From positions 124,001 through 188,000 of IMG/VR virus record IMGVR_UViG_3300030419_008158: DNA of 64,000 bases, one strand, 5' to 3'. The notes beneath the pieces were generated by a model. That model made no database searches, was not told where the DNA came from, and saw nothing but the letters and a program-made list of their open reading frames with translations. Below, piece by piece: positions 26,017 to 64,000 of this stretch. The stretch's first letter is position 1; each line of letters opens with the position of its first letter. The position numbers and the translations under genes are program-made.

Positions 26017-26078
26017 TTACTTCACCTCTTCTCTATAATAGAGATACTAATACATAAAGTACAAAAGTAAATGAACTT
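26009..26078 (-). promoter_or_regulatory. 14-bp perfect inverted repeat covering the start codon of the first glycan gene
   Basis: aagttcatttactt (26009-26022) and aagtaaatgaactt (26065-26078) are exact reverse complements; ATG at 26016; SD GAGGTG at 26023-26028. Confidence 0.55.
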
Positions 26079-26237
26079 TCTTATAGATGATTCTTTAAGA
26101 AAATAATCTCTATAGAGATAGAAGATATCTTAAGAATCTCAGTCTCTTTCCCCGAGTCCAGGTTCATTTAAAGAATAGAAGCATTTCTATAAATGTTCAA
26201 AAAAAAATAATTATTTTCTAGAAATGATGAAAATTAC

Positions 26238-27683: not shown

Positions 27684-27697
27684 TTAGCCCTCCCAGA

Positions 27698-30955: not shown

Positions 30956-30970
30956 TTTATCTCTCCAATG

Positions 30971-33900: not shown

Positions 33901-36900
33901 TTATACCATCATCTGCTCTAATCTGTCCCTTGAAGTGTGTTCCGCCGGTGGCACCGGTCATGAACAGTGTACCGGGGGTGTTTAGTGATATTGATCTATT
34001 TGCTACACCACCGCTACCTGTTAGCCACATTGCGCCGGCTGCACCATCATCTAAGTCTAAAAAGTCTATTTGCCCAATGCTGGAACCCAGCTTCAGAGAA
34101 GAGCTGGCAAATACTTTTACAGGACCGTGTGGATTTCGAACGATAGCATCGTCACCAGAAGGAGGCTTCAGCTCCATTGTGCCGGTTACTTCCAAACCGC
34201 CGTCAATTTTGAGAGGTGATCCGCCGTGGAGAGTTCCTGATATTACAACATCTCCACCGAATACAGCGACACCTCCTCCGGATCCGTCCTTAGACCCTAT
34301 GGTTCCCGATACAAAGAATGATGTGTCTGTAAAATGTTTGGGATCTACACTAGTGGGCGCGCCGCCAGAAAGTATATAAACCTGGCCCCCGTGTGATGCA
34401 GATGTCATCAAAAAGTTTCGATTGGCCCCGCCAAAACCACTTCCGTAGGTTGGCATAGCCATCTCTGTCACCAAAAATGAAGCAGGACTTTTAGCTAGAG
34501 ATCCGGTCCCTAGACCTATCATTATTGATCCTGCGCCTCTATTTTGAATGTTTACAGAATTAGCACCACCCACAGCCGGCAAAGTATCTTTCGAGCGTAA
34601 ATTGATATGGAAGTAAGCATTACTGTCATCATTATCATTTATAAATTTAATGCCGCGATAATCGGAGGTTGACTGTGCTGAATTGTCTATGAAAAGCGTC
34701 CCGCTGGATAATAAGTCACCTCCAACTACAGTCGTTCCTCTAGCATTTGATGTACCCTTCCAGTCTATTGCGCCTGATATAAAAGTCGAAATATCGGCGC
34801 CCATAGAGGACGGTATGCTACCGCCTTGAATTATGTTGACATCTGCTCTGTGTGCCAGGTGTGTACCCTCTATGACTGAACTGACTCCGCCGTAAAGTGT
34901 TCCAGAAATAACAACATCGCCCCCAAAAGCACTCACGGCTGCTGAGTCTATTACATCTTTTTTCCCTTTTGAACCACTGACAAAGAAATAAAGATCTGAT
35001 CCTTCATGATTTGCAGTGTGTGTAAATCCTTCACCACCCGCTAGTGAAAGGGATGCCGTTGTTACAAACTCTCCCTGCCCAGGAACGTTAAAGGATCCGG
35101 TTGTAACTGTGCCGCCTCCTCCTCCGCTTCCAACTTCAACTTCACCGCTTTCGTTCTTGAAATATAGCTTTGTTACACCGGAGTCGTCTTTACCGTAAAG
35201 CACAACAGCACCATCAGGTATTGTACCTGGTGCGGAAATCTCTTCAAGATACATGGCGCCAGAGACAACAACATCACCACCAAATAATGAAACATTGTGA
35301 TCATCTCCTCCTTTGCCTCCCACGGCGCCTGAGACAAAGAAGTTGACATCCATGTATTCTGATTCGTTAGGAGAATTTATGCCACCTCCTGATAGAATTA
35401 ATACCTGATCCCACCTGTTGTATTGTGAGCTCGGGCCTCCCAAATATATGATGTCACTGTGATCACCCTCTGACTCTGACAAAACAAGTCCGGCCTTGCC
35501 TCCAGCCTCTATGCTGATTTTATCATCAGAAAAATGAATTTTTGTGTTTGAGTCCCCAATTCTACTGACAGTGTTTTGGACTTCTATGCCGTTACCGTTT
35601 GTTATTCTAACTTTCTCACTGCCGTCCACATTGAATAGAATGTAGCCAGTTCCGCTGTTGTCACCAAAATGCATATTGGTGTCATCTGCCAAAGAACTAG
35701 TAATAGCTGTTACATGAAGGGCAGTTTCTGCATAAAGCGCGCCGGAGACAACAGTATCGCCTCCAAAAACTGCTGTTTTGCCAGTTGCCTCTCCCTTTTG
35801 ACCAACTGACCCGCTAACAAAGAAAAACGCATCTGCTCCGGATGCGTCTGCTGTATGACTGAAACCAAGACCACCAGCAACTGATAGAGATGCAGTGGTC
35901 ACAAACTCTCCCGGTGATGGAACGTTAAAGCTACCTGTCGTGCTACTTCCACCGCCACCGCCACTACCTATTGGATTTCCGTTCCCATCATACAGGGTTC
36001 CGCTAACAACAACATCTCCACCAAAGACCGCAGTCCCTCTATCTGTAGCAGAATTTTTTGACCCCCTAGATCCAGAAATATAAAAGTTGGTATCATCGCC
36101 TGTTGAAGCGGATCTTCCATTTCTGTTCTGGAACCTTAGTTGATCAGCAGTAAAATCAAGTACTGTTTTACTGCCTGATTCTTGTGTTCCCCAAATAGAG
36201 CCAGAAATAACAACGTCACCACCAAAGACCGCGACTCCCGTGCTATCTTTGCCCCCAGAAGTTCCTGATACGTGAAAGAATGTGTCACCACCAGGTGAAA
36301 GCTCGCCAGAAGAGTCTGATGTTTGAAACTGAATATAGTTGTGTTGTCCGCTGACCTTTATAATTCCTGCGGAGTCTTTTGAGTTTACAACAAAATCTTG
36401 CAGTGATCCGTCAGCAGAATCTGTGGGAGGTGTTCCGACAACCATTGCACCGCTGACCATTACATCGCCACCGAAAATCGATGTACCCCTAGTTGATGTA
36501 TTTCTAGATCCCATAGACCCGGATACCCATACATGAGCATCTAGGCCCAATCCGGTTGCACCGGCAGTTTCACCAATAGCAGCTGCAGCAACTCCGGAAT
36601 TTGATCCCAAAGCATAGAGCGTGCCACTTATGACTGTGTCGCCGCCGAATAGCGATGTAACATGTGAATCTGTATGTTTAGCGCCGGCGCTTCCAGAAAC
36701 AAAAAATGCTACATCTTCTCCACTTGACTGATCAGCAGAATGCCCACTACCACCGGAAAGAATTAGAACCTGCTCGTTCCCTGATTGTGCGATTCCCTTG
36801 ATCAACTGTTTACCCAGAGCATCTGCATAAACAATAAAATCAACATCATTTGCGTTGTTGTTTATGTTGATAGACTTTTGACCAGAATCTCCATCTAATT

Positions 36901-38041
36901 GTATAACTACAGTCCCATCAGCTTGTATTTTTACATCATTATCTTGAAAATCAATTCTTGTGTTAGAATCAGATAAGTGAGAAACATACTGTGAAACTAT
37001 TAGTTCACCTCGAACTGTGAGGTCATCGCCAACGTCTAGATCATCTGTAATGGTGAGATCATCAGTATAAAGTGCGCCGGAAACTACGACGTCACCCCCG
37101 AAGACCGCAGTCCCTTTTGTGGAGGATCCCTTGGAGCCTTGCGATCCAGAAACATAGAATGCAACATCAGATTGAGCGGCTTCGTTAAAAGATGTAGCTC
37201 CGCCACCAGACAGGACTAAGACTTGATCAAATTTATATGGATTGCCTGAACCTAGCCCGTAGCTCCCTAGCCATACTTTTTGATTCGGACCATCGGCAGA
37301 AAGAGCTGTAAGTGACTCTGCGTCTAAGAAAAATTGACCATCTGCAGGAAATGCTATTTGTGTAGTCAGATCTCCGATGTGTCTGACGCTTCTAGCAATA
37401 TCGATTGAAGCCGCCCCTGCCCCGTAAACCTCCAAGACACCGCTTGTTACAACATCACCACCAAAAACTGATGTTCCTCTAGTTGATGTTCCTTTAGAGC
37501 CTACAGCCCCAGAAACATAGAATGCAACATCATTTTGGGAACCTTCATCAAAAGATGTAGCTCCGCCGCCCGATAGAATTAAAACCTGGTCTTTGCTAGC
37601 ATCAACAAAAAGTGCATGTGTTTTATTTTCTGACTCGACCCTAAGATCATTTTCTGGATCTCCCTCGCCCGATTCATTGACAATTAGTCCTTCATGAATC
37701 GTGGCACTCTGAGAAACAATAAGTGATCCGGATACAGAAAGAGATCCTGTGGCGCTAAGATCAACCTCGACGACCTGTCTTTCCGCATACATTGTACCAG
37801 AAATGACTACGTCTCCACCAAAAAGCGTGACATCTGTTCGTGTGTTTTTACTTCCTGTCACAAACATAAAAACGTCTGTGCCGACATTTGCGAGAAGTGC
37901 AGAGTTGCTTAGAGCTTCTCCCTCATAGCCAGAAGAATCAGATGCACTAACAACCAGAATGCTGGGCTTTCCAGATTCAGATCCGGATCCGATTATTTGT
38001 GTAAGCCTGACCTGACTAGCTCTAAAATCTTTAGTTGCCAT
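30971..38041 (-). CDS. Giant tail-fibre-like protein (2356 aa)
   Basis: About 17 copies of D..F.VSG..G.K.....G..(V/L)FGGD..(V/S)SG; YTAGDGLDLSG fibre motif; C-terminal NIYTGDLHLRNDRGDWTIVEE domain. Confidence 0.8.
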   Translation of the reverse strand: MATKDFRASQVRLTQIIGSGSESGKPSILVVSASDSSGYEGEALSNSALLANVGTDVFMFVTGSKNTRTDVTLFGGDVVISGTMYAERQVVEVDLSATGSLSVSGSLIVSQSATIHEGLIVNESGEGDPENDLRVESENKTHALFVDASKDQVLILSGGGATSFDEGSQNDVAFYVSGAVGSKGTSTRGTSVFGGDVVTSGVLEVYGAGAASIDIARSVRHIGDLTTQIAFPADGQFFLDAESLTALSADGPNQKVWLGSYGLGSGNPYKFDQVLVLSGGGATSFNEAAQSDVAFYVSGSQGSKGSSTKGTAVFGGDVVVSGALYTDDLTITDDLDVGDDLTVRGELIVSQYVSHLSDSNTRIDFQDNDVKIQADGTVVIQLDGDSGQKSININNNANDVDFIVYADALGKQLIKGIAQSGNEQVLILSGGSGHSADQSSGEDVAFFVSGSAGAKHTDSHVTSLFGGDTVISGTLYALGSNSGVAAAAIGETAGATGLGLDAHVWVSGSMGSRNTSTRGTSIFGGDVMVSGAMVVGTPPTDSADGSLQDFVVNSKDSAGIIKVSGQHNYIQFQTSDSSGELSPGGDTFFHVSGTSGGKDSTGVAVFGGDVVISGSIWGTQESGSKTVLDFTADQLRFQNRNGRSASTGDDTNFYISGSRGSKNSATDRGTAVFGGDVVVSGTLYDGNGNPIGSGGGGGSSTTGSFNVPSPGEFVTTASLSVAGGLGFSHTADASGADAFFFVSGSVGQKGEATGKTAVFGGDTVVSGALYAETALHVTAITSSLADDTNMHFGDNSGTGYILFNVDGSEKVRITNGNGIEVQNTVSRIGDSNTKIHFSDDKISIEAGGKAGLVLSESEGDHSDIIYLGGPSSQYNRWDQVLILSGGGINSPNESEYMDVNFFVSGAVGGKGGDDHNVSLFGGDVVVSGAMYLEEISAPGTIPDGAVVLYGKDDSGVTKLYFKNESGEVEVGSGGGGGTVTTGSFNVPGQGEFVTTASLSLAGGEGFTHTANHEGSDLYFFVSGSKGKKDVIDSAAVSAFGGDVVISGTLYGGVSSVIEGTHLAHRADVNIIQGGSIPSSMGADISTFISGAIDWKGTSNARGTTVVGGDLLSSGTLFIDNSAQSTSDYRGIKFINDNDDSNAYFHINLRSKDTLPAVGGANSVNIQNRGAGSIMIGLGTGSLAKSPASFLVTEMAMPTYGSGFGGANRNFLMTSASHGGQVYILSGGAPTSVDPKHFTDTSFFVSGTIGSKDGSGGGVAVFGGDVVISGTLHGGSPLKIDGGLEVTGTMELKPPSGDDAIVRNPHGPVKVFASSSLKLGSSIGQIDFLDLDDGAAGAMWLTGSGGVANRSISLNTPGTLFMTGATGGTHFKGQIRADDGISGSLTQLTDGTPYLIAGDNITISTGSSGAVTINAAAGSGGGSGDPSATYIVLSATGSLNNERVLTAGSGISLSDAGAGGALTIASTGGTVTSGSFNVPSPAEFVTTASLSVAGGKGMTYTADSVGSDAFFFVSGTIGSKDSSTAGTAVFGGDLLSSGTIHLDDVLSISKSGDKSVILKALQTGGAGGGSLEIQEDSGNAVITVSEGSDNSGQLIVNGDFANVDFVVNSSGGSGANAIKVDASTDQVLILSGGGATSYNEATGDDVNFYVSGTVGSRGTSTRGAAVFGGDVVISGTLHGQDIHVSEYIYHSGDTDSNTFIQFAEDSIGITAGGEQLITVSEAGQDIVKIGDGGDVDFQVRTDGDDNTLYVQGSSDRVGIGTNSPSSLLHLKESAPTLSLQRESNSNDSTVAFIGSEGSTGAIMHISSSNDLVFKTHNGSAPEEMFRIGSHWGSLNRQIIFLSGSGLHEGAMQPKNAADIAFFVSGAIGSRGTSTKGTAVFGGDLYSSGSVYASTVHASTVTSAAVSGSLTKLSDGTSYLIAGSNVTITTGSSGAVTITSADTNTEYTAGDGLDLSGTTFSTDLKSGGGLKIDSTELAVDNTVIATLTGSTFSGAVTAPALSGSLTHLSDGTSYLIAGSNVTITTGSSGAVTIASSGGGVADAVGWSGPANQVIATSGSLTIGTTSATPGDADIFFASNGAAVFNEQGASVDFRVESNLKENALLVDGSSDQVLILSGGGATSYNEAAGADVNFYVSGTADNAGSANRGTSVFGGDLYVSGGFYLATNSDPLALSVDHTTDRVSWFGGGSPNSRMLINNRYGSALDISSSGVVVNEIGAATDFRVESRLKANALLVDGSTDQVLILSGGAASSTNEAVGSDVAFYVSGSTSSASTSTRGTSLFGGDVVASGTILPGADLGSNLGAPSRRFGNIYTGDLHLRNDRGDWTIVEEADYLCVVNNLTGKKFKMALIPLDENE

Positions 38042-42655: not shown

Positions 42656-42881
42656 CGAAGTGATTGGGTGCCTCGACTAACTTATTTATGAAAGTACATG
42701 CAGAATCATAAAGTGCTTCTTTTTTGGACATTCTATTCAATTCAACCGCGTATCTAACGATGCCGCTTATAGTGCCTAGAGAAAGCAAAACTATGGAAAG
42801 TGTAACACTTTGAGAAAAAGAAAGTGCTCCACATGCAATTAGAGTTTCTGAAACAAACCCTTTCATTAGCTGTCTCTCCAT
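42624..42881 (-). CDS. Small membrane protein
   Basis: Two hydrophobic stretches in the N-terminal half. Confidence 0.55.
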   Translation of the reverse strand: MERQLMKGFVSETLIACGALSFSQSVTLSIVLLSLGTISGIVRYAVELNRMSKKEALYDSACTFINKLVEAPNHFDVSAFSKEIH

Positions 42882-44797
42882 AAGTTGTTGCTGGCATACG
42901 TAAGAATTTCTTCTGCAGAATCTTCGTTGTATCCATATTGTTCTATCATAACTTTCACCATTTCGTTATATTTCTTCTGTTGATCTTTGTCTCTAGTTTT
43001 GGACTTGGTAACAATTCTAGAAATATCTCGTACAGAGTTAATCAAGTATGACTCAATCGCTTCCTTGAGCGGTTCGTAAGATCTAAAGTCTACTTTTTCT
43101 CCTCTTCTCATTTTGGCGAACATATAAGCAGTGACATCCGACCTAAAGCCATCCCTAGAAGATCCTGTAACTCCAATTTGCTCTTCTATTGAAGCCATAA
43201 ATCGATCATCAGGCTTTCGAGTCTCTTTTGTGACTCTATCTTTCATCTTTTGTTTTGTTGTGTAGGCTTCTGCGTTGTCAAGATAGGTGTCAAAGAGTGA
43301 CTGTGCCTGTTCTTCGTAGGCGGAAATAAATGCTTTTGCAATTTCTGAATCCAGCATTTTCAAATACTCTTCCCGAAGAACTTTTCCAATAAGCTCGAGA
43401 CATTTTTGCTTGAATTCTTCGTCGGAAATTTGTTCTTTAACAGAATTTGTCAAGGATTCCATTAGTGATACCGGCGTAATCATATTTTTATCACTTTTGG
43501 CCAGTGCACCGTCCAAAGCCTTGGTTATAAATCTAGTCGATATGCCGCTCATCCCTTCTCTTCGAGCTTCTTCCTTTAGATCTTTGATGTCAATTTTTTT
43601 AACTCTGCCTTTTTCTACAACTTCTTCTCCATTGTAGATCTTCATTTTAGTGACTAGATCACACTTAGCAGACTGTTTAAGTCTAGACATGATGCTAAAC
43701 ATTGAAGCAATTCGCAGCGTGTGGGGCGCAATGTGTGCATCAAAATCTGATTGGCCTAGCATTTTTTCGTAAATTTTAATTTCTTGATCTAGTTCTAGGC
43801 AATAAGGTACATCTACTTTTACAACTCTGTCTAAAATTGCTTCGTTTGTGTGTTCACTTTGGAACCTATTCCACTCTGCTTCATTGCAATGAGCTAAAAT
43901 TACACCATCGAAGTGAAGCATATCACTTTTTCCGGGCGAAGGAATTCTTTTTTCTTGAGTCGCTGTAATAATTGTATGAAGAAATTCTATTTCATTTTTG
44001 AAAACTTCTACTAGCTCAACAATACCCCTGTTACCGACATTGAATGCACCGTTTAGAGAAAGAGCACGAGGGTCATCTTCTGCATATTTGTCAAGTTTTG
44101 ATATATCAACTGATCCTATCAAAACAGAAGTATCTTGACTGTTGGCATCCATGGGAGGGACAGAGGCTACGCCACGACGACCGCGCTGGGAAAATGTCGT
44201 CTCTTCAACCTCAAAATCCTCATATTTTCCATCCAACTGCTGAAGAAGGAGGTGGCGTGCAATAGGACTAATATCGCCATGGATTCTCACCCCTAGCTCT
44301 TTTTCAAACGTATCTCTTAGTGCTCTTGGAACCAGCTGTAATGGCTCTCCTCGATGAGGATCACCTTTCAAGTGGTAATATTTGTGTCCTTCTAGTGCAC
44401 TTTTTATATGCTCAGTAAGCGCAGATTTACCAGCCCCGACAGGCCCCATAAGAAGTAAAACTTGTCTACTTTCTTCTCCGTTGTGAGCCGAGCTGTGCAT
44501 AAAGCTCATGAGTTTTTCTAGCACTAATTCCATGCCAAAAAAATGCTCTTCAAAGTACTTGTAAACTTTGACTGAATTATTGTCAAAGATTCTACTTTTT
44601 CGCGGGTTGCTATCTGGCATTTTTTCAACACCGTACTCAATAATAGCATCGTAAAGTCGTCTATGTGCAGACTTTACAACACTAGGATCTTTGGCAACTT
44701 TTTCCAAGTAATCGCTAAAAGTACCTTCAAACTTTTTCTTTTTGGAACCTTCTTCTCTCTGTTCCTTTATTGCATCTAATAGTGTGTTTACAGACAT
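42866..44797 (-). CDS. prkA: PrkA/YeaG-family AAA+ protein
   Basis: FFGM, GPVGAGKS Walker A, NVGNRGIVELVEVFKN, AHCNEAEW, AILDR, APHTL. Start moved to 44797 (GGAG SD). Confidence 0.93.
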   Translation of the reverse strand: MSVNTLLDAIKEQREEGSKKKKFEGTFSDYLEKVAKDPSVVKSAHRRLYDAIIEYGVEKMPDSNPRKSRIFDNNSVKVYKYFEEHFFGMELVLEKLMSFMHSSAHNGEESRQVLLLMGPVGAGKSALTEHIKSALEGHKYYHLKGDPHRGEPLQLVPRALRDTFEKELGVRIHGDISPIARHLLLQQLDGKYEDFEVEETTFSQRGRRGVASVPPMDANSQDTSVLIGSVDISKLDKYAEDDPRALSLNGAFNVGNRGIVELVEVFKNEIEFLHTIITATQEKRIPSPGKSDMLHFDGVILAHCNEAEWNRFQSEHTNEAILDRVVKVDVPYCLELDQEIKIYEKMLGQSDFDAHIAPHTLRIASMFSIMSRLKQSAKCDLVTKMKIYNGEEVVEKGRVKKIDIKDLKEEARREGMSGISTRFITKALDGALAKSDKNMITPVSLMESLTNSVKEQISDEEFKQKCLELIGKVLREEYLKMLDSEIAKAFISAYEEQAQSLFDTYLDNAEAYTTKQKMKDRVTKETRKPDDRFMASIEEQIGVTGSSRDGFRSDVTAYMFAKMRRGEKVDFRSYEPLKEAIESYLINSVRDISRIVTKSKTRDKDQQKKYNEMVKVMIEQYGYNEDSAEEILTYASNNLWRDS

Positions 44798-44850
44798 ATT
44801 ACAAATCTCCAGCGCCATGGCATCTTATAAAACATAGGAAGACGATAAAA

Positions 44851-46152
44851 TCAAATCTCCCATGGCTCTCCCTCTATTATAGTATTTAAGACTACATTTT
44901 TACCCCATAAACATTTTGAATGTTCGACAGTATGATCTGCGTAGTCTAAATCAAGATCTCTTCCGTCGTGCTCATGCCGAAGCATAAGCGTACCATCCAT
45001 ATCGATATCATCTACTTTAATGACAGGAAGACGAGAATCAGCAATAGAGTCACACATGTGTGCTTTAACTTTTTTCCACCCATCATCATCTGAAATTTCA
45101 TCAATTGTAAATGCGTCTTTTTTTTCACTCCAGCTAAACAGATTTAGCTCATTGCAAAGCTCTTCGGTCAAATACTGTCTAACAAAACTAATGTCATTTC
45201 CTGACTCTCTTGCGACAAAGCATTCTTCTAGGCCGTGCTTTTCTTTGATGTCTTGAAAAATTACAAACCCCAAATGATACGGATTTAACCTTCCAATATG
45301 AGGCCTAATAACAGCATTGTGCATTCGCAAAAATGGAATATGATACTTGTCTGGTAAATTCAAATCGTGACATATTGTATAGTGCCAAAAAGAAGCCCAC
45401 CCCTCGTTCATTATTTTAGTTTGTATTTGTGGCATAAAATAATAAGCTTCATCTCTAACAATCTCTATTACATCACGTTTCCAGTCGGGCATTCTTGCAT
45501 GTTCTGAAATAAATCCCATAATATCACAGTCCGGCTCAAGAGGTGGACTGTCTAAGTCTAATAGAATTAAATTCCCTTCTTTGTCATGCTCTCTTAGCCC
45601 TTTATAATATTCGACCAATTCTTTGTGTGTTTTTCGCTCCGATCCGTCTCTATAGATCTGATACTGGAGAGCGTGACATGCATCAATTATTTCTTCGACT
45701 TTTTCTATTCCAATATAGGGATCTTCGACGTACTCTTGAATTCTTTTTTTAGCCTGTCTAAATCTACCGATCACAGAATCTGCTCTTGTATTTTTAAACA
45801 TTCGATTGTTTTTGAAAAAATCAGAGTGTCCGACACAATGAGCCATGATAAGAATTTGCAAGTAAAGAGGGTTTTCTCGCATAAGATATGCGATAGAAGG
45901 GTTGGAATTGATAATAAGCTCGTATGGAAGGCCTTCGGCACCCAAGTTATACATTTGATGTGTTCTTTCAAAAGACTTTCCGTAAGACCAATGATCGTAA
46001 TGTGTGGGCATGCCGTGATAAGACATATGACCAATCATTGAGTAATAGTCACAAACTTCATAGCTTATTGGGTACCAATCCAGCCCATACCCATTTGCGA
46101 TTTCAATAATTTTGTCATCCCATTCTTTCAAATCATCTACAGACCAGCTCAT
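44851..46152 (-). CDS. spoVR: SpoVR/YcgB-family protein
   Basis: GMPTHYDHWSYGK, YELIINSNP, AHCVGHSDFFKNN, TKIMNEGWASFWH, NPYHLG, LRHEHDGRDL. Confidence 0.93.
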   Translation of the reverse strand: MSWSVDDLKEWDDKIIEIANGYGLDWYPISYEVCDYYSMIGHMSYHGMPTHYDHWSYGKSFERTHQMYNLGAEGLPYELIINSNPSIAYLMRENPLYLQILIMAHCVGHSDFFKNNRMFKNTRADSVIGRFRQAKKRIQEYVEDPYIGIEKVEEIIDACHALQYQIYRDGSERKTHKELVEYYKGLREHDKEGNLILLDLDSPPLEPDCDIMGFISEHARMPDWKRDVIEIVRDEAYYFMPQIQTKIMNEGWASFWHYTICHDLNLPDKYHIPFLRMHNAVIRPHIGRLNPYHLGFVIFQDIKEKHGLEECFVARESGNDISFVRQYLTEELCNELNLFSWSEKKDAFTIDEISDDDGWKKVKAHMCDSIADSRLPVIKVDDIDMDGTLMLRHEHDGRDLDLDYADHTVEHSKCLWGKNVVLNTIIEGEPWEI

Positions 46153-47321
46153 TTTTCTTCTCCGTAGTTTCCAAACATTATCTTAAATGACTTCCATACA
46201 TCTTCTTTTTCTTTAATAGAGGTACATTTCATTGACCTTCCGACCAATTGTTTTAGGTGATTTGAAATTTTTTGTTCCTGAAACCATTCGGGTTCTGCTC
46301 CCGGTGTTATTTCACAGTAACCAAATAGTTGACAAATATCTCTAAGTTTCGTTGCAGCAGACAACATATCTTCCGTATCATGACCAAAGTTGTCCCCATC
46401 TGATGCATGGAACGCGTAGACATTCCAAGCAGACGGATGGTATCTTTGATTAATCACATCAAGTGCTTCATTGTAAGCAGTAGAGACTATAGTTCCTCCG
46501 GAGGATCCTCTTGTAAAAAATTGTTCTTCACTTACTTCTCGTGCTTCCATGTCGTGTGAAATAAAGACTATTTCTGTTTGATCGTATTTTGATCGAATAA
46601 ACTGATATAAAAGAAAAAAGAAGCTTCTTGCAAGAAATTTTTTCGGTTTGCCCATAGAGCCTGAAACATCCATCATCATCACAATGACAGCATTTGTATT
46701 TTCTTTCATTTTGGGCTTATAGTGTCGATATGTCAGATCATCGTTGTGAAAACTACCTTCTAGCTCTTCTATTTCTTCTCCGCCCTCTCTTTGTTTTGCC
46801 TTGAGTCTTTTTATTCGATTGATAGCTGATTTTTTCTTGTCTAGGCGTGGAATAATTCCTTGAGGTCTATAGCCAGTTCTTTTTAGTTTTTCTGATTTGC
46901 TTTGAGTAAAAGCTTTGCGCTCCATGTCAGGAAGCTCTAATTCATCAAAAAGATATTTTGCTAATTCGTCGAGTGATATTTCAACCTCGTAAAACTCATC
47001 GCCTCTTTTGTCACCGGCTTTTTGGGGCTTACCGTCTTTTGATTTATTTTTTTCTCTTATAATCTGGTCTCTTGCAAGATCTTTTCCAGGTGCTGATCCT
47101 ACATTTTTATTAGCCTCGCCACTACCGTAGACAAAACGATATTCCTTTATCCCTCTAACGGGTATTCGAAACTTCTTTTTTCCGTCTTGACCAATAATAG
47201 ATTCATCGGCAACAATATCATGAATTCCTTCACGAATTGCCTTTTCGATCTTGTGTTTGTGTCGTCGACGATCAGAAGCAGATCGATCTGCTGTAGTCTT
47301 ATGGTGAGAAAATCCTGACAT
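46149..47321 (-). CDS. yeaH: YeaH/YhbH (DUF444, vWA-like) protein
   Basis: DRRRH...IRE, IPVRGIKEYRF, MMDVSGSM, FISHD, GGTIVS, WNVYAFHASDGDN. Confidence 0.9.
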   Translation of the reverse strand: MSGFSHHKTTADRSASDRRRHKHKIEKAIREGIHDIVADESIIGQDGKKKFRIPVRGIKEYRFVYGSGEANKNVGSAPGKDLARDQIIREKNKSKDGKPQKAGDKRGDEFYEVEISLDELAKYLFDELELPDMERKAFTQSKSEKLKRTGYRPQGIIPRLDKKKSAINRIKRLKAKQREGGEEIEELEGSFHNDDLTYRHYKPKMKENTNAVIVMMMDVSGSMGKPKKFLARSFFFLLYQFIRSKYDQTEIVFISHDMEAREVSEEQFFTRGSSGGTIVSTAYNEALDVINQRYHPSAWNVYAFHASDGDNFGHDTEDMLSAATKLRDICQLFGYCEITPGAEPEWFQEQKISNHLKQLVGRSMKCTSIKEKEDVWKSFKIMFGNYGEEK

Positions 47322-56405: not shown

Positions 56406-58499
56406 CTACTCAGGATTGCAAATCTCAGAAAGAATTTGCATTAAAGAGCCGTACATTTGTGTAGCGTTGCTAGACAGTTGAAAATACTCACCTGAACATG
56501 TGGAAGCAATTTCATCCCACTCCCATGATTCGTTAGTAGAAAAAGTGTATATCTTGGTTTTGGGCGCACTGATACAAGCATTTTTTATCTGCTCTACAGA
56601 AATCTCAGGTATCATGTAGCTTTGCTCTTCTTCATCGCTGAACACGATAATGATTTTATCAGCAGTCGGTCTCCAGCCAATTGTAAACACGTCTTTTGGT
56701 GGGATTGACTCACCGACATCTGTGTCCCACTCTGTTGCACTCATATCCATGTTTGCACCAGAAGAAATATTATGCAAAGACAAGTATATTCCATCAAGAA
56801 GCATCTCACTTCCTGTGTTCATTCCGTCGCTTCCAAGCGCAGCAAATGCTGCTAGAAAGTCCGGAAAGGGTGCAATATCTGACACTAGAATTAATCTTTC
56901 TTCAAATTCTCCTGCAAGTTGTTTCGGACCAACAATAAGACCCCAGTGTAACTTATCTTCAAGGGAATAGTAGGCAGCAAATTGATTTAATGCAATTAGA
57001 ACAGCTTCGATTTCATCAATCATCGAGCCAGACCAATCGATAACAAAAAGAATATCAGTTTCTGGTACTTCTTTTCCCCAGTCAACTTGTCCATCACAGT
57101 CATCATCAATTCCGTTACATTCTTCCGGCTTGGGTAGTACTTGATCTGCGCACATATTATCGATAAAGATATTATCTGACGTGTATGAACCCCAGGATCC
57201 CATATTGCACGTCATATTGCCTGCTTCGCAGATTCCTATGCCTAAAGTACCCTCTGGGCCTGTGTAACAATCTGCAATAAGACCCTCATCAATAAGAGTG
57301 TTGCAGTTGTCATCAAAGTTATTACACTTCTCTTCATTTAGAGGCATACCGACCAAGGAGTCACAAGCTGGGTCTGAGCCGGGAGGATCAACTAGCCAGT
57401 GGCAAATAGCGTAGCAAGGTGATAGAACAATCTCTTCACACCCAGGATCATTACAAAGACATGTCTTATATCCCTGGCCGCACAAGAGTGGCGGCTCAAA
57501 ACAGGGTAGAAGCTTTCCAACGTCTTGCACTGTGCATAGACACTCTATTCCATCGTCTATCAAGCCGTTACAATCGTCATCAAACCCGTTGCAAATCTCA
57601 GGCATTGGTTGCTTGGCTGTGCAACCACTCCAGTTTCCTGCGACGCAGACTTTGACCCCGACACCACATGCCGTGCTACACTCTTCTATTAGCTCATCAT
57701 CAACAAACCCATTGCAATCATTGTCGATCCCGTCGCATTCTTCAGCCGGAACTGCTCCGCACTCATCGCATGCGTTTCTTTGACCTTCGTCAATTTCACC
57801 ATCACAGTCATTGTCTGCATAATCACAAATTTCTTCTTGAGGTATGGGCCCGTAACAGACAAAGACACCGTCTTCACATATGGCATTCCCAGGCCCACAC
57901 TCATTTTCACAGGGTTCCACACCGATATCTTCGTCTGTAAGGCTATCACAGTCATTATCTTGTCCGTCACAAATTTCTTCTGTGCAGTCTTGACAGTCTG
58001 AAAAGTAAAGCTTGCCCTTGTCACAAACAACGTTTTGTTTACCGAGGGACCCATCTTCCATTTCACAATACTGCCACCCATAATCTAATGTCTGTGCACC
58101 TGGAGGACACTCGTATGCTTCGTAACATTCTCCCATAAAAAGAATTTGAGGTGGATCACATTCGTTTATTCCTAGAGGTTTACAAGGAACGTCTGAATCG
58201 TGACAAAAGTTTAGAACGACCTGCTTCTTCTCCATTGTAGGTTCACCGAATACAGGTGGACAAAACCATTCTTGTGTTTCACAACACTGAGGTTTGCAGC
58301 TGCACCACATAAACTGATCCTCTATTGTGATAGTTGCACAGGGATCTACATCTTCGGGAGGTGTGTCTGGTGTGTCGACATTCCTGGGATCTGTATCTAT
58401 TACAACTTGTGTGCTAGAAACATCTACCGGACTGCCACGGTCGTCGGCACAACCAACAACAAATAATAACGTAAGCGCCAGTGAGACAATTTTATTCAT
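56406..58499 (-). CDS. Lipoprotein with six Cys/Asp-rich (MopE-like) repeats and a C-terminal vWA domain
   Basis: MNKIVSLALTLLFVVGC lipobox; 6 x E.C.G.D.DC.G..DE; DILFVIDWSGSM MIDAS; FSDEE. Confidence 0.82.
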   Translation of the reverse strand: MNKIVSLALTLLFVVGCADDRGSPVDVSSTQVVIDTDPRNVDTPDTPPEDVDPCATITIEDQFMWCSCKPQCCETQEWFCPPVFGEPTMEKKQVVLNFCHDSDVPCKPLGINECDPPQILFMGECYEAYECPPGAQTLDYGWQYCEMEDGSLGKQNVVCDKGKLYFSDCQDCTEEICDGQDNDCDSLTDEDIGVEPCENECGPGNAICEDGVFVCYGPIPQEEICDYADNDCDGEIDEGQRNACDECGAVPAEECDGIDNDCNGFVDDELIEECSTACGVGVKVCVAGNWSGCTAKQPMPEICNGFDDDCNGLIDDGIECLCTVQDVGKLLPCFEPPLLCGQGYKTCLCNDPGCEEIVLSPCYAICHWLVDPPGSDPACDSLVGMPLNEEKCNNFDDNCNTLIDEGLIADCYTGPEGTLGIGICEAGNMTCNMGSWGSYTSDNIFIDNMCADQVLPKPEECNGIDDDCDGQVDWGKEVPETDILFVIDWSGSMIDEIEAVLIALNQFAAYYSLEDKLHWGLIVGPKQLAGEFEERLILVSDIAPFPDFLAAFAALGSDGMNTGSEMLLDGIYLSLHNISSGANMDMSATEWDTDVGESIPPKDVFTIGWRPTADKIIIVFSDEEEQSYMIPEISVEQIKNACISAPKTKIYTFSTNESWEWDEIASTCSGEYFQLSSNATQMYGSLMQILSEICNPE

Positions 58500-59968: not shown

Positions 59969-60565
59969 TTAGAAAAGCTCTTCATTTTTTGGGTCATGCT
60001 TGACCAGAATCTTCTTCATAACAGCAACTTGTTTATCTGACATGCGTCTGCCGGATTTCATTTGATCTGCGAGGCTTTGCAAGAAATTATTGGTCTTAAC
60101 AGACAGGTAATCTTCGATAGCTGCTAATTGTTTCCCTCTTACAGAGCCGGCCATTGGAGGTATATTTTTTCTTCGCCTCCATGGCGGACTAGTCCCGAGA
60201 TAAGTCTCACCACCATATTTTTGACCAAAGGCTGCACCTCTGCGCGATACGTTACCTTCATCATCGTAGATATTACCCTCGGCGTCGACGTATTGTTCGT
60301 ATTCCAGCAGCATTAATTCACGACGAACAATGCGTCGAAGTTCATTCTCAGAAAGAAGTGGTTCTTGAGCTGGAAGAGACTCCGGAGATTTTGTAGTAGC
60401 TTCAGACCCTACAGCCTTTGAGTGATCTATGTCTAACTCTAGATTTTTTGCTGTACCCTCAATGTCTCCGGACCACGCATCTTCAACGGGCTCCACATCA
60501 GAAGGGTGTTCTTCATCTAGCATTTCTAAGATAATTTTTTTGAGCTGCTTTTTTGTAATTTTCAC
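59969..60565 (-). CDS. Leader-bearing multi-module hypothetical protein
   Basis: GTG start at 60565 with GGAG SD (MKITKKQLKKIILE); second LSENELRRIVRRELMLLE module. Confidence 0.75.
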   Translation of the reverse strand: MKITKKQLKKIILEMLDEEHPSDVEPVEDAWSGDIEGTAKNLELDIDHSKAVGSEATTKSPESLPAQEPLLSENELRRIVRRELMLLEYEQYVDAEGNIYDDEGNVSRRGAAFGQKYGGETYLGTSPPWRRRKNIPPMAGSVRGKQLAAIEDYLSVKTNNFLQSLADQMKSGRRMSDKQVAVMKKILVKHDPKNEELF

Positions 60566-60581
60566 TTTAGAATCTCCATTC

Positions 60582-60920
60582 TTAAATAAAGGCACCTAGT
60601 TCTATTTCGGTTGCTCTGTCTTCTGCCCACTCCTCTATGTCGAGTGGACCGATAAAGCCGTTCTGCGGGGGTGTGTAGTCAAGCCATGTTCGATTCGGGG
60701 CACCGGCGCGCTGTGCTAGGTCGTCTAGATCTTCAAATCCAAGACCTCTCTGGTCCAGCCACTCTCCCCAACCATGCATGAGCTTCTCGTCCGTTTTTTG
60801 TTCACCCTCCCCACCGGGTGCATAGTAATCTTCTTCACCGGGAGGAGCAGAGAAATCTCTATCATCATCGGCCCATGCTTCCCTGATGATTCGCCTGAGC
60901 TGTCGCTTAGTGATTCTCAT
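60582..60920 (-). CDS. Leader-bearing hypothetical protein
   Basis: MRITKRQLRRIIRE followed by an acidic body. Confidence 0.8.
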   Translation of the reverse strand: MRITKRQLRRIIREAWADDDRDFSAPPGEEDYYAPGGEGEQKTDEKLMHGWGEWLDQRGLGFEDLDDLAQRAGAPNRTWLDYTPPQNGFIGPLDIEEWAEDRATEIELGAFI

Positions 60921-60924
60921 ATGA

Positions 60925-61149
60925 TCATCTGCCTCTGCGCAAGACTTTAACAGTTACGCCCTTGACATCACCGGTCATAATATAAAGTTCGCCGGGTGCA
61001 TCACCTTTTTCAACAGTTGCCACCCCTTTGTTTATTCTATTCTGTAAATCAGCTGCCAATCTTTCTGGAGTCTCCTCCAGATCAGGTAAGTGACTTGCAT
61101 CTAGCATTTCCTGAATGATTTGTTTTAGCTTTTTCTTTGAGATTTTCAT
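60925..61149 (-). CDS. Leader-bearing hypothetical protein
   Basis: Start moved to 61149 (TAATG overlap); MKISKKKLKQIIQE. Confidence 0.8.
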   Translation of the reverse strand: MKISKKKLKQIIQEMLDASHLPDLEETPERLAADLQNRINKGVATVEKGDAPGELYIMTGDVKGVTVKVLRRGR

Positions 61150-61412
61150 TATCTCATCCTCTGAATTTTTTCTAACATTAGATTCTTGCATTCTCTCTTG
61201 ATTCCGGGTGAGCGAAAGCTGCCACCAATACGCACAGCCTCGCTGATACAATGCTGGATCAGTTCGTCGATGGACATTTCAACATGTGCTAAGAGGTCTG
61301 ATCTTGCTTCATCTTCATCAGCAGAGATTGTGCCATCAGGATTCATTTCATTGAGAATCTTGACTTTCTCTTCTTTAATAATTCTTCTGAGTTGCTTCTT
61401 TGTGATTTTCAT
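61149..61412 (-). CDS. Leader-bearing hypothetical protein
   Basis: MKITKKQLRRIIKEE; GGGAG SD. Confidence 0.8.
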   Translation of the reverse strand: MKITKKQLRRIIKEEKVKILNEMNPDGTISADEDEARSDLLAHVEMSIDELIQHCISEAVRIGGSFRSPGIKRECKNLMLEKIQRMR

Positions 61413-61414
61413 TG

Positions 61415-62140
61415 TTATCTCCCGCTAACCTTTCTATACATCGCCTTATGAAGAGAATTAACCATAGGTTCAAGGTCTGTCCCGTACAACACAGGCATAA
61501 CCCTGTCTTCAAGATCATAAATGGCTTGTTGTATTTTTGCGTTATTTTGAAGTTCGTATTGCTCTGCGTTGGCGTCTTCTTGTAGCTCTTCTTTGATAAT
61601 TCTTCTGAGTTGTCGTTTTGTGATCTTCATTCTGTTTTTTCCTTCAATCTTATATTCGTCGCGACCTACTTCAAAATCTTCATCATCTGGCTCTTCGATG
61701 CCAGCGGCTATAGCCTTTTTGTTTTCTACATCCGCTACGGGGGAATCATCAGCGACGTAACCCACACCAGTATTACTTGCAGGTGAAACGTCGTATGGAG
61801 GTTTCGGTGCCGGATTCTTACTGAGTGACGGGTGTCCGGCATAGAGGCTCCAGTCGATTGGCTCGTCGACAGGCACCTCTACTTTTGGGCCGAACCTTTG
61901 ATTATCCGGATGGTAGTTATCCTCCGCGACGCCTCGGGCCGCCTGGTCAGCGGTTTGAAACATATGATTTAGAGACCCAACTCCCATAAACGGCCGGCCC
62001 TGCGCCTTGCCCAGCCAGTCGGTGGCCGCTTGTTTTGACCCCTTTGCCGGCCAGAATGGTGCGTGCTTATCTCGCCTCTCGAGAAGACGGGCCTTCTCTT
62101 CTTTGATGATTCTTCTGAGTTGTCGCTTTGAGATTCTCAT
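61415..62140 (-). CDS. Leader-bearing hypothetical protein with a second complete internal leader
   Basis: MRISKRQLRRIIKEE; in-frame MKITKRQLRRIIKEE from ATG 61630. Confidence 0.8.
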   Translation of the reverse strand: MRISKRQLRRIIKEEKARLLERRDKHAPFWPAKGSKQAATDWLGKAQGRPFMGVGSLNHMFQTADQAARGVAEDNYHPDNQRFGPKVEVPVDEPIDWSLYAGHPSLSKNPAPKPPYDVSPASNTGVGYVADDSPVADVENKKAIAAGIEEPDDEDFEVGRDEYKIEGKNRMKITKRQLRRIIKEELQEDANAEQYELQNNAKIQQAIYDLEDRVMPVLYGTDLEPMVNSLHKAMYRKVSGR

Positions 62141-62143
62141 TAT

Positions 62144-62344
62144 CTATGCTTCTGCCTCTATAGTACCTTGTTCATATCCAGCATCATACGCCTGTGGATA
62201 TGTTGAGCGATCAGCATCGTTTGGATACCCCTGATAAGCATCATCATACCCGCGATCGTACTCTTGATCTTCATCCCTGTTGGGGCTCATCATTCTAATC
62301 TCTTCCTTGATGATCCTTCGCAGTTGTCGCTTGGTGATTCTCAC
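62144..62344 (-). CDS. Leader-bearing small acidic protein
   Basis: GTG start with GAGGA SD; MRITKRQLRRIIKEE; YDxGY repeats. Confidence 0.78.
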   Translation of the reverse strand: MRITKRQLRRIIKEEIRMMSPNRDEDQEYDRGYDDAYQGYPNDADRSTYPQAYDAGYEQGTIEAEA

Positions 62345-62357
62345 GGTTTATCCTCTT

Positions 62358-62966
62358 TTAAGCTCTAAAGGCATCTCGAACATAGTCGGTTGCGTAGTCA
62401 ACGGCAGATTCCTTTTCGCCCTCAGACTCGGCGTACTCAATATTAGCAAGGGCATCGAGTGCCTCATCAACCTCAAACCCCGTACCCAAGTTTCGAACCA
62501 TGTCTTCCAATTGAGCCAATGTTGCTGAATCGTTAGGGTTTCGTGATAGCTTGCTCAGCAGATCACTAGCTTGATCGTAAGTTGCTCGGCCACCAGATCG
62601 ATTGTCGTCTACTACGTCCTGCACAAATGCGATCATTTGGTCAATAGGTTGTGATGGAGTATCAGAGTCTTCTTCGGAAACTGTGTGATAGCCTGCAGCT
62701 TTAAGAGTGTTTAGCGACTGCAACTGTGCTTCAACACCGTCACGGGGCACCGGGCCGCCACCAAACTGCCTAGCAACATCATCATCGGTCATTGCGACGT
62801 TATTTCCGTCTAGATACCAAAAACCCTGTGCTAAATCAGCATGACCCTTTTTGTCCATCTGCTCCATCAATCTTCTGCGCACAATTCTACGAATCTTCTG
62901 CTCAGCCAGAACTTTGGCTTTCTCTTCTTTGATGATTTGTCTTAGTTGTCGCTTGGAGATTTTCAT
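62358..62966 (-). CDS. Hypothetical protein with extended double leader
   Basis: MKISKRQLRQIIKEEKAKVLAEQKIRRIVRRRLMEQ; AAGGA SD. Confidence 0.8.
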   Translation of the reverse strand: MKISKRQLRQIIKEEKAKVLAEQKIRRIVRRRLMEQMDKKGHADLAQGFWYLDGNNVAMTDDDVARQFGGGPVPRDGVEAQLQSLNTLKAAGYHTVSEEDSDTPSQPIDQMIAFVQDVVDDNRSGGRATYDQASDLLSKLSRNPNDSATLAQLEDMVRNLGTGFEVDEALDALANIEYAESEGEKESAVDYATDYVRDAFRA

Positions 62967-62981
62967 GTTGTTTTTTCCTTC

Positions 62982-63371
62982 TTACGTCATCTCGACAAAT
63001 TCGTCAAAGTCACCAGCTGCGTAAGGATCACCCCCTGCATACCAGTTGACAAACCAGTCCTTGAGCATTCCAACATCACCCGCGACGTCGAGCATGCTGT
63101 ACCCGCTTGGGCCGGTCCCCCTGTCTGTAAATCTCAGACCACGATATCGGGGGTTTCTTGTCATCTGCTTGAATGGACCACTCTCATCACGTATTTCCCC
63201 GTGTTCGTCCATCATGTCTAGGCCTCGAATTATTCCCTGTTGACCGGTTGGCTCAGCTGGTCCTCGCATCTTGATAGCTTGTTCAGCGATACGACGGACC
63301 TTCTGTTCAGCCAGGACCTTGGCTTTCTCTTCTTTGATAATTCTTCGAAGCTGTTTCTTTGTGATTCTCAT
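62982..63371 (-). CDS. Hypothetical protein with extended double leader
   Basis: Start moved to 63371 (TAATG); MRITKKQLRRIIKEEKAKVLAEQKVRRIAEQ. Confidence 0.8.
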   Translation of the reverse strand: MRITKKQLRRIIKEEKAKVLAEQKVRRIAEQAIKMRGPAEPTGQQGIIRGLDMMDEHGEIRDESGPFKQMTRNPRYRGLRFTDRGTGPSGYSMLDVAGDVGMLKDWFVNWYAGGDPYAAGDFDEFVEMT

Positions 63372-63784
63372 TAGAAAAAAGCTCCTATTATGTTTAGCCA
63401 TGTGTCAAGGGTAAATCTGTCGCCGGCATCTGGGTCCATTTCGTCCGCAAGCTCATCGTCCCTGACATGCGTTACACCGTATGTGGATCTAAGCCAGTTG
63501 GCCAGCGCGACATGATCAGCCTTTGAGTCCAGATCTCCTTCCCACCAGACTGTCTTAATGCCTGGCTTGAGCTCAGGATGTGAGTCTGGGTATTGAATTA
63601 CAATACCGGAATTTTCAAGAGTACCAAGGCCGCTGGGAGGCGATCTGTAGTCTATCACTAGTGTTTCACCACCAGCCTGCTCCAATAGTTTCCTGCGGAC
63701 AATTCGACGGACCTTCTGCTCAGCCAGAACTTTGGTCTTCTCTTCTTTGACTATTCTTCTAAGTTGTCTTTTTGTGATTTTCAT
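63371..63784 (-). CDS. Hypothetical protein with extended double leader
   Basis: Start moved to 63784 (AAGGA SD); MKITKRQLRRIVKEEKTKVLAEQKVRRIVRRKLLEQ. Confidence 0.8.
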   Translation of the reverse strand: MKITKRQLRRIVKEEKTKVLAEQKVRRIVRRKLLEQAGGETLVIDYRSPPSGLGTLENSGIVIQYPDSHPELKPGIKTVWWEGDLDSKADHVALANWLRSTYGVTHVRDDELADEMDPDAGDRFTLDTWLNIIGAFF

Positions 63785-63795
63785 TCTGTATCCTT

Positions 63796-63912
63796 TTATG
63801 CTACGTTGCACTTGCCCAGGCAGCTCTCACACGAGCAACAACCGCAGCAGCAGCAGCAGTGTGAAGATTTAAATAAGTTGCGTAGACGATGAAAAAATAG
63901 ATTTGCTGACAT
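63796..63912 (-). CDS. 38-aa Cys-rich, metallothionein-like peptide
   Basis: Not in the ORF track. CAGGAG SD 8 nt before ATG 63912; MSANLFFHRLRNLFKSSHCCCCCGCCSCESCLGKCNVA*; 10 Cys. Confidence 0.7.
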   Translation of the reverse strand: MSANLFFHRLRNLFKSSHCCCCCGCCSCESCLGKCNVA

Positions 63913-63945
63913 GGCGTCATCTCCTGTGGTTTGTATTACGAGATG

Positions 63946-63953
63946 TAAATATC
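63946..63953 (-). promoter_or_regulatory. GATANTTA putative late-promoter motif
   Basis: GATATTTA 33 nt upstream of ATG 63912. Confidence 0.5.
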
Positions 63954-63958
63954 ACAGT

Positions 63959-63999
63959 GCGGAGAAAATGCCGCTTGCGGCGAGATCATTTTTCTCCGC
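63959..63999. other. Stem-loop at the window edge
   Basis: gcggagaaaatg ... catttttctccgc outer arms (one bulge) enclosing gccgc-tt-gcggc. Confidence 0.5.
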
Positions 64000-64000
64000 G

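Follow-up and report, generated by a model that had tools for sequence, protein, structure and literature searches.

A cysteine-rich small-protein family, possibly metal-binding, encoded beside small-gene arrays of marine phages

The window, i.e. the whole stretch of 64,000 nucleotides analysed here, corresponds to bases 124001–188000 of a 284,429-bp IMG/VR record that is rated complete by CheckV, and nearly all of its genes lie on the minus strand. Close to one end it contains an open reading frame (ORF) for a 38-residue peptide, which combines a predicted N-terminal amphipathic helix with a block of cysteines at positions 19–23, 25, 26, 28, 31 and 35 (Table 1). As the window ends at position 64000, the side upstream of the peptide gene was read from the whole record. 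An earlier note on this DNA had pointed to a Shine–Dalgarno (SD) sequence, an upstream motif, a stop codon 11 nt before the next start, 10 cysteines within 17 residues (Cys19 to Cys35) and an amphipathic N-terminal helix. The sequence elements were all present as described, with an AAGGA inside the 11-nt gap between the stop and the ATG of the next gene, and the helix was reproduced by AlphaFold2, which predicted it as the only structured element of the peptide and with low confidence (pLDDT 56). Further upstream, a stable hairpin overlaps the stop codon (63986–63988) of a 136-residue ORF; it is not followed by a T-run and is not a canonical terminator. Searches with this upstream ORF and with the 137-residue downstream neighbour found no relatives among viral contigs or in five records of related jumbo phages.

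Table 1. Features of the peptide locus and its genome. Positions refer to the window unless stated otherwise.
Feature	Position	Strand	Details
38-residue peptide, coding sequence	63796..63912	minus	ATG at the 63912 end; TAA stop at 63796–63798
Amphipathic helix (predicted)	residues 3–13 of the peptide		
Cysteine block	residues 18–35 of the peptide		His-Cys5-Gly-Cys2-x-Cys-x2-Cys-x3-Cys
SD sequence AGGAG	63921..63925	minus	8 nt 5' of the peptide ATG
Promoter-like motif GATATTTA	63946..63953	minus	upstream of the peptide ATG
Hairpin	63959..63999	minus	10-bp outer stem GCGGAGAAAA / TTTTCTCCGC plus inner 4–5-bp stem
First downstream gene, 137 residues	63371..63784	minus	array N-terminus M-K-I-T-K-R-Q-L-R-R-I-V-K-E-E
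Eight or nine further small array genes	59969..63401	minus	same N-terminal motif
T4-type prohead protease	82529–82945 of the 284,429-bp genome		E = 5.7e-27

The nine or ten genes that follow the peptide gene all start with M-[KR]-I-[TS]-K-[RK]-Q-L-R-R-I-I-K-E-E, and the ORF at 61415–62140 holds a second, in-frame internal copy of this motif. Across the genome, the motif gave at least 16 regular-expression matches and 23 DNA-level matches, which fall into two clusters, and another member of the array family is found upstream of the peptide gene at genome positions 188780–189217. The peptide gene thus lies ahead of a set of genes whose products begin alike. The statement of the earlier note that it heads a cargo array holds for the run of nine or ten genes but not for the whole array region, given the member upstream. 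The peptide gene likely heads a transcription unit. Prohead proteases of the T4 family cleave behind the Glu of a hydrophobic-x-Glu motif, and the otherwise diverse internal proteins of T4 carry capsid-targeting sequences in the form of N-terminal propeptides of 10–20 residues (PMC5694885, PMC3012670). Because the array N-terminus ends in I-K-E, which conforms to hydrophobic-x-Glu, and T4-type proteases cut after Glu, the label "cargo array" seems reasonable by analogy. The neighbouring array genes have an N-terminus of the form expected of such a propeptide; the peptide has no Glu before residue 30 and no hydrophobic-x-Glu site before the cysteine block. An array protein found no match among isolate phages, and the literature searched returned nothing for the array N-terminal motifs.

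The core of the peptide gene is a (TGC)n repeat across which three frames are open in the window, so that comparative evidence was needed to judge whether the Cys frame is a gene. Five records of related jumbo phages, found via their helicase, were searched for the peptide at the protein level, and it was present in one of them, the helicase of which is 50% identical. The homologue, an ORF of 32 codons, shares the N-terminus and the H-C5-G-C2-x-C core of the peptide; it sits between two array-type genes, and its stop overlaps the next ATG. Its differences in the core (TGC/TGT, GGT/GGG and GAG/GAA) are synonymous in the Cys frame only. All IMG/VR contigs were scanned twice, with a back-translated C5-G-C2 pattern followed by a stricter F-N-x-x-H-C5-G-C2 pattern, plain repeats being discarded by a script. 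These scans yielded at least 66 viral contigs or loci and 55 distinct peptides of 31–49 residues.

Among 18 of these genes, the entropy at codon positions 1, 2 and 3 was 0.57, 0.39 and 1.11, respectively, and 0.96, 0.61 and 1.16 for the 12 codons that precede the core and lie outside the first search pattern; substitutions fall mainly at third codon positions. Each of the remaining five frames contains stops in most of the 18 genes. For a set of 58 distinct sequences, in which synonymous sites are near saturation, pN/pS was 0.16 overall and 0.30 in the N-terminal 12 codons, compared with 1.40 and 0.74 in the two shifted frames. Of 52 distinct regions upstream of homologues, 51 contain an SD-like sequence, whereas random ATGs have one in 15% of cases, and the peptide stop overlaps the next start or lies at most 19 nt from it in 41 of 50 loci. 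A contig from an independent marine DNA run is identical across the whole peptide ORF. Two metatranscriptome runs contained short, ambiguous contigs that touch the locus, and the read depth over the ORF possibly comes from repeats or relatives.

The earlier note had set the Cys frame against an overlapping Ala-rich frame and held that a reading frame not conserved at homologous loci would speak against the gene. The Cys frame is conserved in the 66 viral contigs, with substitutions of the coding type, which favours a gene. As judged from these substitutions, the comparison shows the family to be kept in the Cys frame under purifying selection, and the 38-codon ORF is, on this sequence evidence, very probably a translated gene. 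That it is instead a (TGC)n simple-sequence repeat, open in one frame by chance and encoding nothing, is extremely improbable and effectively refuted by the comparative data: the core is indeed a trinucleotide repeat with three open frames in the window, and bare C5-G-C2 DNA-pattern matches in viral and cellular contigs are mostly such repeats, but the TGC/TGT alternation is silent only in the Cys frame, the non-repetitive N-terminus, SD sequence, start and stop are conserved across 66 contigs from phages whose helicases may be only ~50% identical, and the peptide is the sole SD-preceded ORF of 20–90 codons with at least six cysteines in the 284-kb genome.

The family pattern reads M-K-x-h-L-H-[KR]-L-x-N-L-F-N-x-x-H-C5-G-C2-x-C, followed by two more cysteines, and residues are numbered hereafter from the histidine that precedes the cysteine run, His(0). 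Invariant in all 55 peptides are His(-10), Phe(-4), His(0), Cys(+1 to +5), Gly(+6) and Cys(+7, +8), with Leu(-8), Asn(-6), Asn(-3) and Cys(+10) near-invariant. Although the search pattern fixed only seven cysteines, exactly 10 are present in 53 of the 55 peptides; likewise, exactly two histidines occur in 51, and His(-10) was never part of any search pattern. The layout has two parts, an N-terminal amphipathic helix of ~14 residues and a C-terminal cysteine block. With His(-10), Asn(-6), Asn(-3) and His(0) at i, i+4, i+7 and i+10, these four would fall on one face of the predicted helix and Leu and Phe on the other, and the mean hydrophobic moment is 1.5 sd above that of shuffled sequences. 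Beyond Cys(+10) the arrangements diverge into x-x-G-C-C, x-x-C-x-G-x-C and C-C (GCC, CxGxC and CCC types), the peptide of the window having x-x-C-L-G-K-C-N. The cysteine content is ~26–32%. Phe, Trp and Tyr are absent from all 55 cysteine domains; the N-terminal helix carries the invariant Phe and often a second aromatic residue. The median net charge is +3 and the maximum +13, and about seven members have a C-terminal tail of the R-R-R-G-R-P-R-K-K type or a basic insertion. R-G-R-P is the core of the AT-hook, which such tails resemble. The basic-tailed variants adjoin a primase gene rather than structural genes.

Searches based on hidden Markov models (HMMs), in which no pattern was forced, were performed against 5.8 billion proteins with a word-indexed method and against 1.84 billion representatives exhaustively. 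Each returned only eight proteins, none of them named and most with the H-C5-G-C2 core. Two core variants, H-C-C-S-C-C-G-C-C and H-C5-K-C-C, were among them, as were two long "fusion" proteins, which come from very short contigs or mis-called starts. No family was recognised in Pfam, NCBIfam, PHROGs or PDB sequences, even at E values up to 10, and the ESM Atlas gave no usable match to the peptide. A literature search with the core motif string retrieved DNA primers only, and one on phage metallothioneins nothing relevant. The peptide is almost certainly, as far as these sequence comparisons reach, a member of a previously unannotated small-protein family. Gene callers often miss proteins of fewer than 50 residues, as illustrated by the mere eight called relatives in the exhaustive search; yet the peptide is among the most strongly constrained sequences in the carrier genomes, its H-C5-G-C2-x-C core being shared by carriers that include phages with helicases only ~50% identical.

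Sequencing runs in which the locus was detected derive from marine or seawater metagenomes. A T4-type prohead protease (PF03420, Peptidase_S77) is encoded in 26 of 48 peptide-bearing viral records and in all six that are at least 90% complete (175–205 kb), the other records being fragments; tail sheath and baseplate genes are also present in the 284,429-bp genome. Since all six near-complete records encode this protease, the carriers are, by gene content, read as uncultured T4-like marine myophages. The nearest prohead proteases from isolates, those of cyanophages and a Flavobacterium phage from the Baltic, show no more than 55% identity, and no match to the peptide profile turned up in the genomes of the five nearest isolates (cyanophages, a Flavobacterium phage and a single-cell marine virus). 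Nothing usable came from tblastn and blastn searches of 50,697 isolate phage records, for which the query was very short and low-complexity filtering applied. Among 185,579 species genomes, true members were detected on two contigs of metagenome-assembled genomes only, and the one contig inspected is full of phage-type genes. The family is patchy among close relatives, with one carrier among the five related jumbo phages.

Across loci, the usual place of the peptide gene is within an array of genes for small proteins with a common N-terminal motif, or directly ahead of one. When first residues were read by eye, the downstream ORF was assigned in ~36 of the 50 loci that have one either to the array type described above or to a second type starting M-K-x-L-L-x-x-W-R-K-F-L-x-E. 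The N-terminus of the peptide is not a diverged version of the main type, against the profile of which it scored negatively, and its similarity to the second type (MK-x-LL-x-x-W-R-K-F-L) is weak, with a median of 0.5 bit and a best score of 8.6 bits. Genes upstream of the peptide vary, a DNA primase gene preceding it in ~8 loci, and those downstream are not conserved either. No enzyme family occurs repeatedly beside the peptide among the first 18 loci. The iron–sulfur scaffold gene IscU adjoins the peptide or lies within 2 kb of it in three loci that are probably related; an association with Fe-S assembly was discarded, as IscU occurs in two of 20 large carrier records and none of the seven near-complete ones, and is absent from the 284,429-bp genome.

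The setting recalls the hypervariable loci of T4 internal proteins (IPI, IPII, IPIII and Alt): the peptide sits in hypervariable arrays of small genes, the carrier phages encode a T4-type prohead protease, and the array genes share only an N-terminus of ~15 residues that ends in hydrophobic-x-Glu, like the targeting sequence of the T4 proteins (PMC3012670, PMC5694885). Unlike T4 internal proteins, the peptide begins with a different motif and has no Glu cleavage site; the likeness is one of genomic setting only. The arrays look like a marine counterpart of the T-even hypervariable internal-protein loci and are apparently undescribed; the regular place of the peptide at their head provides a handle on arrays with a shared N-terminal tag.

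The promoter-like motif GATATTTA is not over-represented in the window by count (four found, 3.5 expected). Genome-wide, however, 21 copies lie on the gene strand against two on the other, and for 18 of the 21 an ORF of 30 codons or more begins no further than 36 nt downstream; for the copy before the peptide, the script chose the overlapping Ala-rich frame as that ORF. The motif also precedes the tail sheath, baseplate wedge and head–tail adaptor genes, as well as one other array gene. From this strand bias and the copies before structural genes, we infer a late-type promoter element. The proposed link to late genes is borne out to the extent that the peptide gene and structural, i.e. late, genes have the motif in common, and late expression of the peptide is plausible in the 284,429-bp genome on these grounds. 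It may not hold family-wide, and nor may packaging, because the gene follows a DNA primase gene in ~8 loci.

We tentatively favour, at somewhat less than an even chance, a metal–thiolate mini-protein that is metallothionein-like and delivered in a context-dependent manner. About 12 thiolate and imidazole ligands would fold round a small polynuclear cluster, with Zn(II), Cu(I) or Cd(II) as the metal or possibly of the Fe-S kind, which would resemble, by analogy, those of metallothioneins such as the Zn4Cys9His2 cluster of cyanobacterial SmtA. The N-terminal helix would dock the module to a partner or self-associate. In the 284,429-bp genome, the putative late-type promoter GATATTTA would drive a set of closely spaced genes, with the peptide gene as the first cistron; the products of the other genes share an N-terminus resembling a T4 capsid-targeting sequence, and the peptide would be made together with probable virion cargo. 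It could then store or donate metal, or buffer thiols, for cargo proteins or packaged DNA, and in a minority of members the C-terminal R-G-R-P basic tail may contact DNA. A ligand count that stays fixed despite the shifting last cysteines, together with the lack of aromatic residues in the cysteine block, would be expected of a polynuclear metal–thiolate site as in metallothioneins, and less so of disulfides cross-linked at random or of a simple codon run.

Bacterial metallothioneins include cyanobacterial SmtA/BmtA, with a Zn4Cys9His2 cluster, and mycobacterial MymT, which binds Cu(I). Like these, the peptide is very small and rich in cysteine (~26–32%), with Cys-Cys and Cys-x-Cys motifs, no aromatic residues in the cysteine domain and histidines as possible extra ligands, its 10 Cys and 2 His being compatible with a four-metal cluster. 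The composition is that of a metallothionein in length (31–49 residues), in cysteine number (10 in 53 of 55 members) and in the C5-G-C2-x-C core; the low aromatic content typical of these proteins extends over all 55 cysteine domains, yet an invariant Phe is found in the N-terminal helix. Unlike metallothioneins, the peptide is phage-encoded within cargo-like gene arrays, has an invariant five-cysteine run and a conserved N-terminal amphipathic helix, and has no detectable sequence homology with them: 18 members searched against Pfam and NCBIfam matched no metallothionein family, and no PDB chain was matched, in either case at E values up to 10. By its sequence, then, the peptide resembles a metallothionein in composition and belongs to no curated metallothionein family. 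To our knowledge, no characterised metallothionein has five cysteines in an unbroken run, and neighbouring thiols might just as well pair in disulfides. The bacterial chaperones SlyD and Helicobacter HspA also end in short unstructured tails whose Cys-Cys pairs and His bind Ni or Zn. The peptide likewise has Cys-Cys pairs and His in a short stretch, but the SlyD and HspA tails are appendages of larger folded proteins with far more His, whereas the peptide stands alone and is dominated by Cys.

A fuller version of the metal–thiolate reading is more speculative and somewhat doubtful: that the Cys10His2 module on its amphipathic-helix handle represents the first phage metal–thiolate family, confined to one uncultured lineage of T4-like marine myophages, co-produced and possibly packaged and injected with the hypervariable arrays of capsid-targeted cargo, and that during infection it supplies, sequesters or buffers metal or thiols in hosts from seawater poor in trace metals or sulfur. 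A different role for the module, e.g. in neutralising host defence, is possible. If metal binding holds, marine phages would have a new way to reprogramme the trace-element or sulfur economy of their hosts, and we know of no metallothionein-type protein described before for a phage.

Rather unlikely, and not exclusive of metal binding, is that the peptide is a structural, DNA-associated component of the head interior, packaged with the genome and cargo, in which metal binding is incidental. Outside the reducing cytoplasm, its thiols would oxidise or cross-link in a protamine-like manner and stabilise condensed DNA or an internal protein body. The late-type promoter, the position at the head of a cargo-like array and the prohead protease of the carriers would suit such a component, as would the positive charge of the family (median +3, up to +13), but no targeting or cleavage motif is recognisable, similarity to array N-termini being absent for the main type and weak for the second. 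The R-G-R-P or polybasic C-terminal tails and basic insertions, present in about seven members, likewise suggest DNA contact, and yet these variants are encoded beside a primase gene, away from structural genes. Exactly 10 Cys and 2 His together with an unvarying Gly would suit a defined metal site, as posited for the metal–thiolate mini-protein, better than cross-linking at random.

The earlier note had also listed a modifiable peptide among its options. As a precursor of a ribosomally synthesised and post-translationally modified peptide (RiPP), the first 16–18 residues would be the leader and the cysteine-rich part the core, modified to thiazoles/oxazoles or to radical-SAM thioethers. A conserved leader-like N-terminus followed by a cysteine-rich core is what this would require, and precursors of the streptolysin-S type (SagA family) do have an N-terminal leader and a core that starts with a five-cysteine run. 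The likeness to the SagA family is confined to this start in a short peptide: the context differs, no Ser/Thr-rich continuation follows, and a YcaO cyclodehydratase (PF02624) is absent from the 21 genomes searched, i.e. the 284,429-bp genome and 20 other large peptide-bearing records, while the positive controls of the search were detected. Three radical-SAM enzymes are encoded elsewhere in the 284,429-bp genome, one of a B12-binding type, one lysine-aminomutase-like and one generic, but all three are 40 kb or more away from the peptide, and none shows a SPASM domain. The core lacks both the Ser/Thr pattern and the protease site that are usual in such precursors, and among the first 18 loci no enzyme is found repeatedly as a neighbour. 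The modifiable-peptide option is thus disfavoured by the missing YcaO, SPASM domain and conserved enzyme neighbour, and a RiPP precursor appears quite improbable, a host-encoded modifying enzyme being possible.

It is very improbable that the ORF is a regulatory leader with a functionless product, at which ribosomes would stall on Cys codons when cysteine or charged tRNA-Cys is scarce and thereby lower the coupled translation of the array. Its run of identical codons is as in amino-acid attenuator leader peptides, and in most loci its stop codon runs into or directly adjoins the next start, but this very proximity (11 nt or an overlap) leaves no room for alternative hairpins, while in six loci the next ORF starts 176–224 nt away, and the genes downstream are not conserved. 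Nor would stalling account for the conserved non-Cys residues, with His(-10), Phe(-4) and the Gly in the run invariant and Asn(-6) and Asn(-3) near-invariant, for the total of 10 cysteines kept despite differing C-terminal arrangements, or for the functional-looking C-terminal basic extensions of some members. The remaining probability falls to unforeseen functions, e.g. an inhibitor of a host protein. Cysteine strings are also known from eukaryotes, where that of the cysteine-string protein DNAJC5 is S-palmitoylated by eukaryotic enzymes and acts as a membrane anchor. We know of no enzymes in bacteria or phages that S-palmitoylate strings of the DNAJC5 type; the feature that the peptide shares with DNAJC5 is a dense string of adjacent cysteines with interspersed glycine.

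A phage-borne IscU gene adjoined that of the ten-cysteine peptide homologue, or lay less than 2 kb from it, in three contig loci (L120, L143 and L220), which are probably related to one another. Two of the three carried a fatty-acid-hydroxylase-like gene, and an IscA/HesB-like gene was additionally present in L220. This last locus is on a MAG contig labelled Candidatus Pelagibacter sp. TMED166, which looks like a mis-binned phage contig because its translations, read by eye, included ClpP-like, amidase-like and array-type genes.

A minority of the peptide family bore basic segments, either as an R-R-R-G-R-P-R-K-K C-terminal tail, which resembles an AT-hook, or as an insertion between the cysteine groups. 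These members comprised the homologues at loci L178, L181, L194, L186 and L220, along with proteins P0002 and P0003. Of the four loci whose peptide ends in the R-G-R-P tail, three had the peptide gene directly downstream of a DNA primase gene. On one contig, that of L186, a 284-aa ORF just downstream of the peptide gene displayed an N-terminal G-x-G-x-x-G-x-N motif reminiscent of tubulin/FtsZ.

The array downstream of the peptide gene belongs to a set of at least 16–23 small genes in two clusters, which had in common only an N-terminus of ~15 residues (M-K-I-T-K-R-Q-L-R-R-I-I-K-E-E). The DNA encoding it was 82–92% identical over ~50–60 nt, and 50 nt of this segment matched many unrelated contigs in four marine runs, which indicates that the N-terminal module is widespread. 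As the genome encodes a T4-type prohead protease and the common N-terminus has an I-K-E ending, the array genes resemble those for capsid-targeted cargo at hypervariable loci. No match to the motif strings emerged from a literature search. One array ORF of 241 aa contained a second copy of the motif and represents either a fusion of two array genes or an internal start. Elsewhere in the genome, outside the window, an N run at ~256.5 kb shows where the assembly has a gap or two scaffolds were joined.

The promoter-like motif GATATTTA, found upstream of the peptide gene, was strand-biased genome-wide, with 21 copies on the gene strand vs 2 on the opposite one. It was usually positioned 0–36 nt upstream of a start codon, and the genes it preceded included those for tail sheath, baseplate wedge and head–tail adaptor. 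GATATTTA is probably the late-promoter element of this phage lineage and is distinct from TATAAATA of T4.

Features of the window and genome with their coordinates
Feature	Position (strand)	Description
Array gene clusters	window 59969-63784 (-); genome 184.5-189.2 kb and 274-284.4 kb plus 0-0.6 kb	common N-terminus
Array ORF, 241 aa	window 61415-62140 (-)	second, in-frame internal motif copy ~60 residues from the C-terminal end
GATATTTA copies	window 38720, 53591, 56383, 63946 (-)	
697-aa protein	window 56406-58499 (-)	four copies of MopE-type putative metal-binding Cys/Asp motif (PF11617, E = 8e-17)
Three adjacent genes	window 42866-47321 (-)	650-aa protein of unknown function (phrog_22605), DUF444 (YeaH-like) and SpoVR, in that order
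Higher-G+C block	window 26000-38041 (-)	ORFs of 481, 1085 and 2356 aa
Long ORF run	window 1-26016 (-)	ORFs of 146-631 aa, mostly 200-370; low G+C

The gene for the protein with MopE-type motifs was located ~5 kb downstream of the peptide gene. DUF444 and SpoVR, which together with PrkA/YeaG form a bacterial stress triad, were here phage-borne and adjoined PhoH and a helicase. The higher-G+C block had a G+C content of 0.42–0.47, compared with 0.34–0.40 upstream, and its largest ORF ended in a C-terminal domain of the endosialidase type, a hallmark of tail fibres or spikes. Among the products of the long ORF run were a family-2 glycosyltransferase, a carbamoyltransferase and a radical-SAM enzyme. 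The phage thus seems to carry here a cluster for glycan or small-molecule modification.
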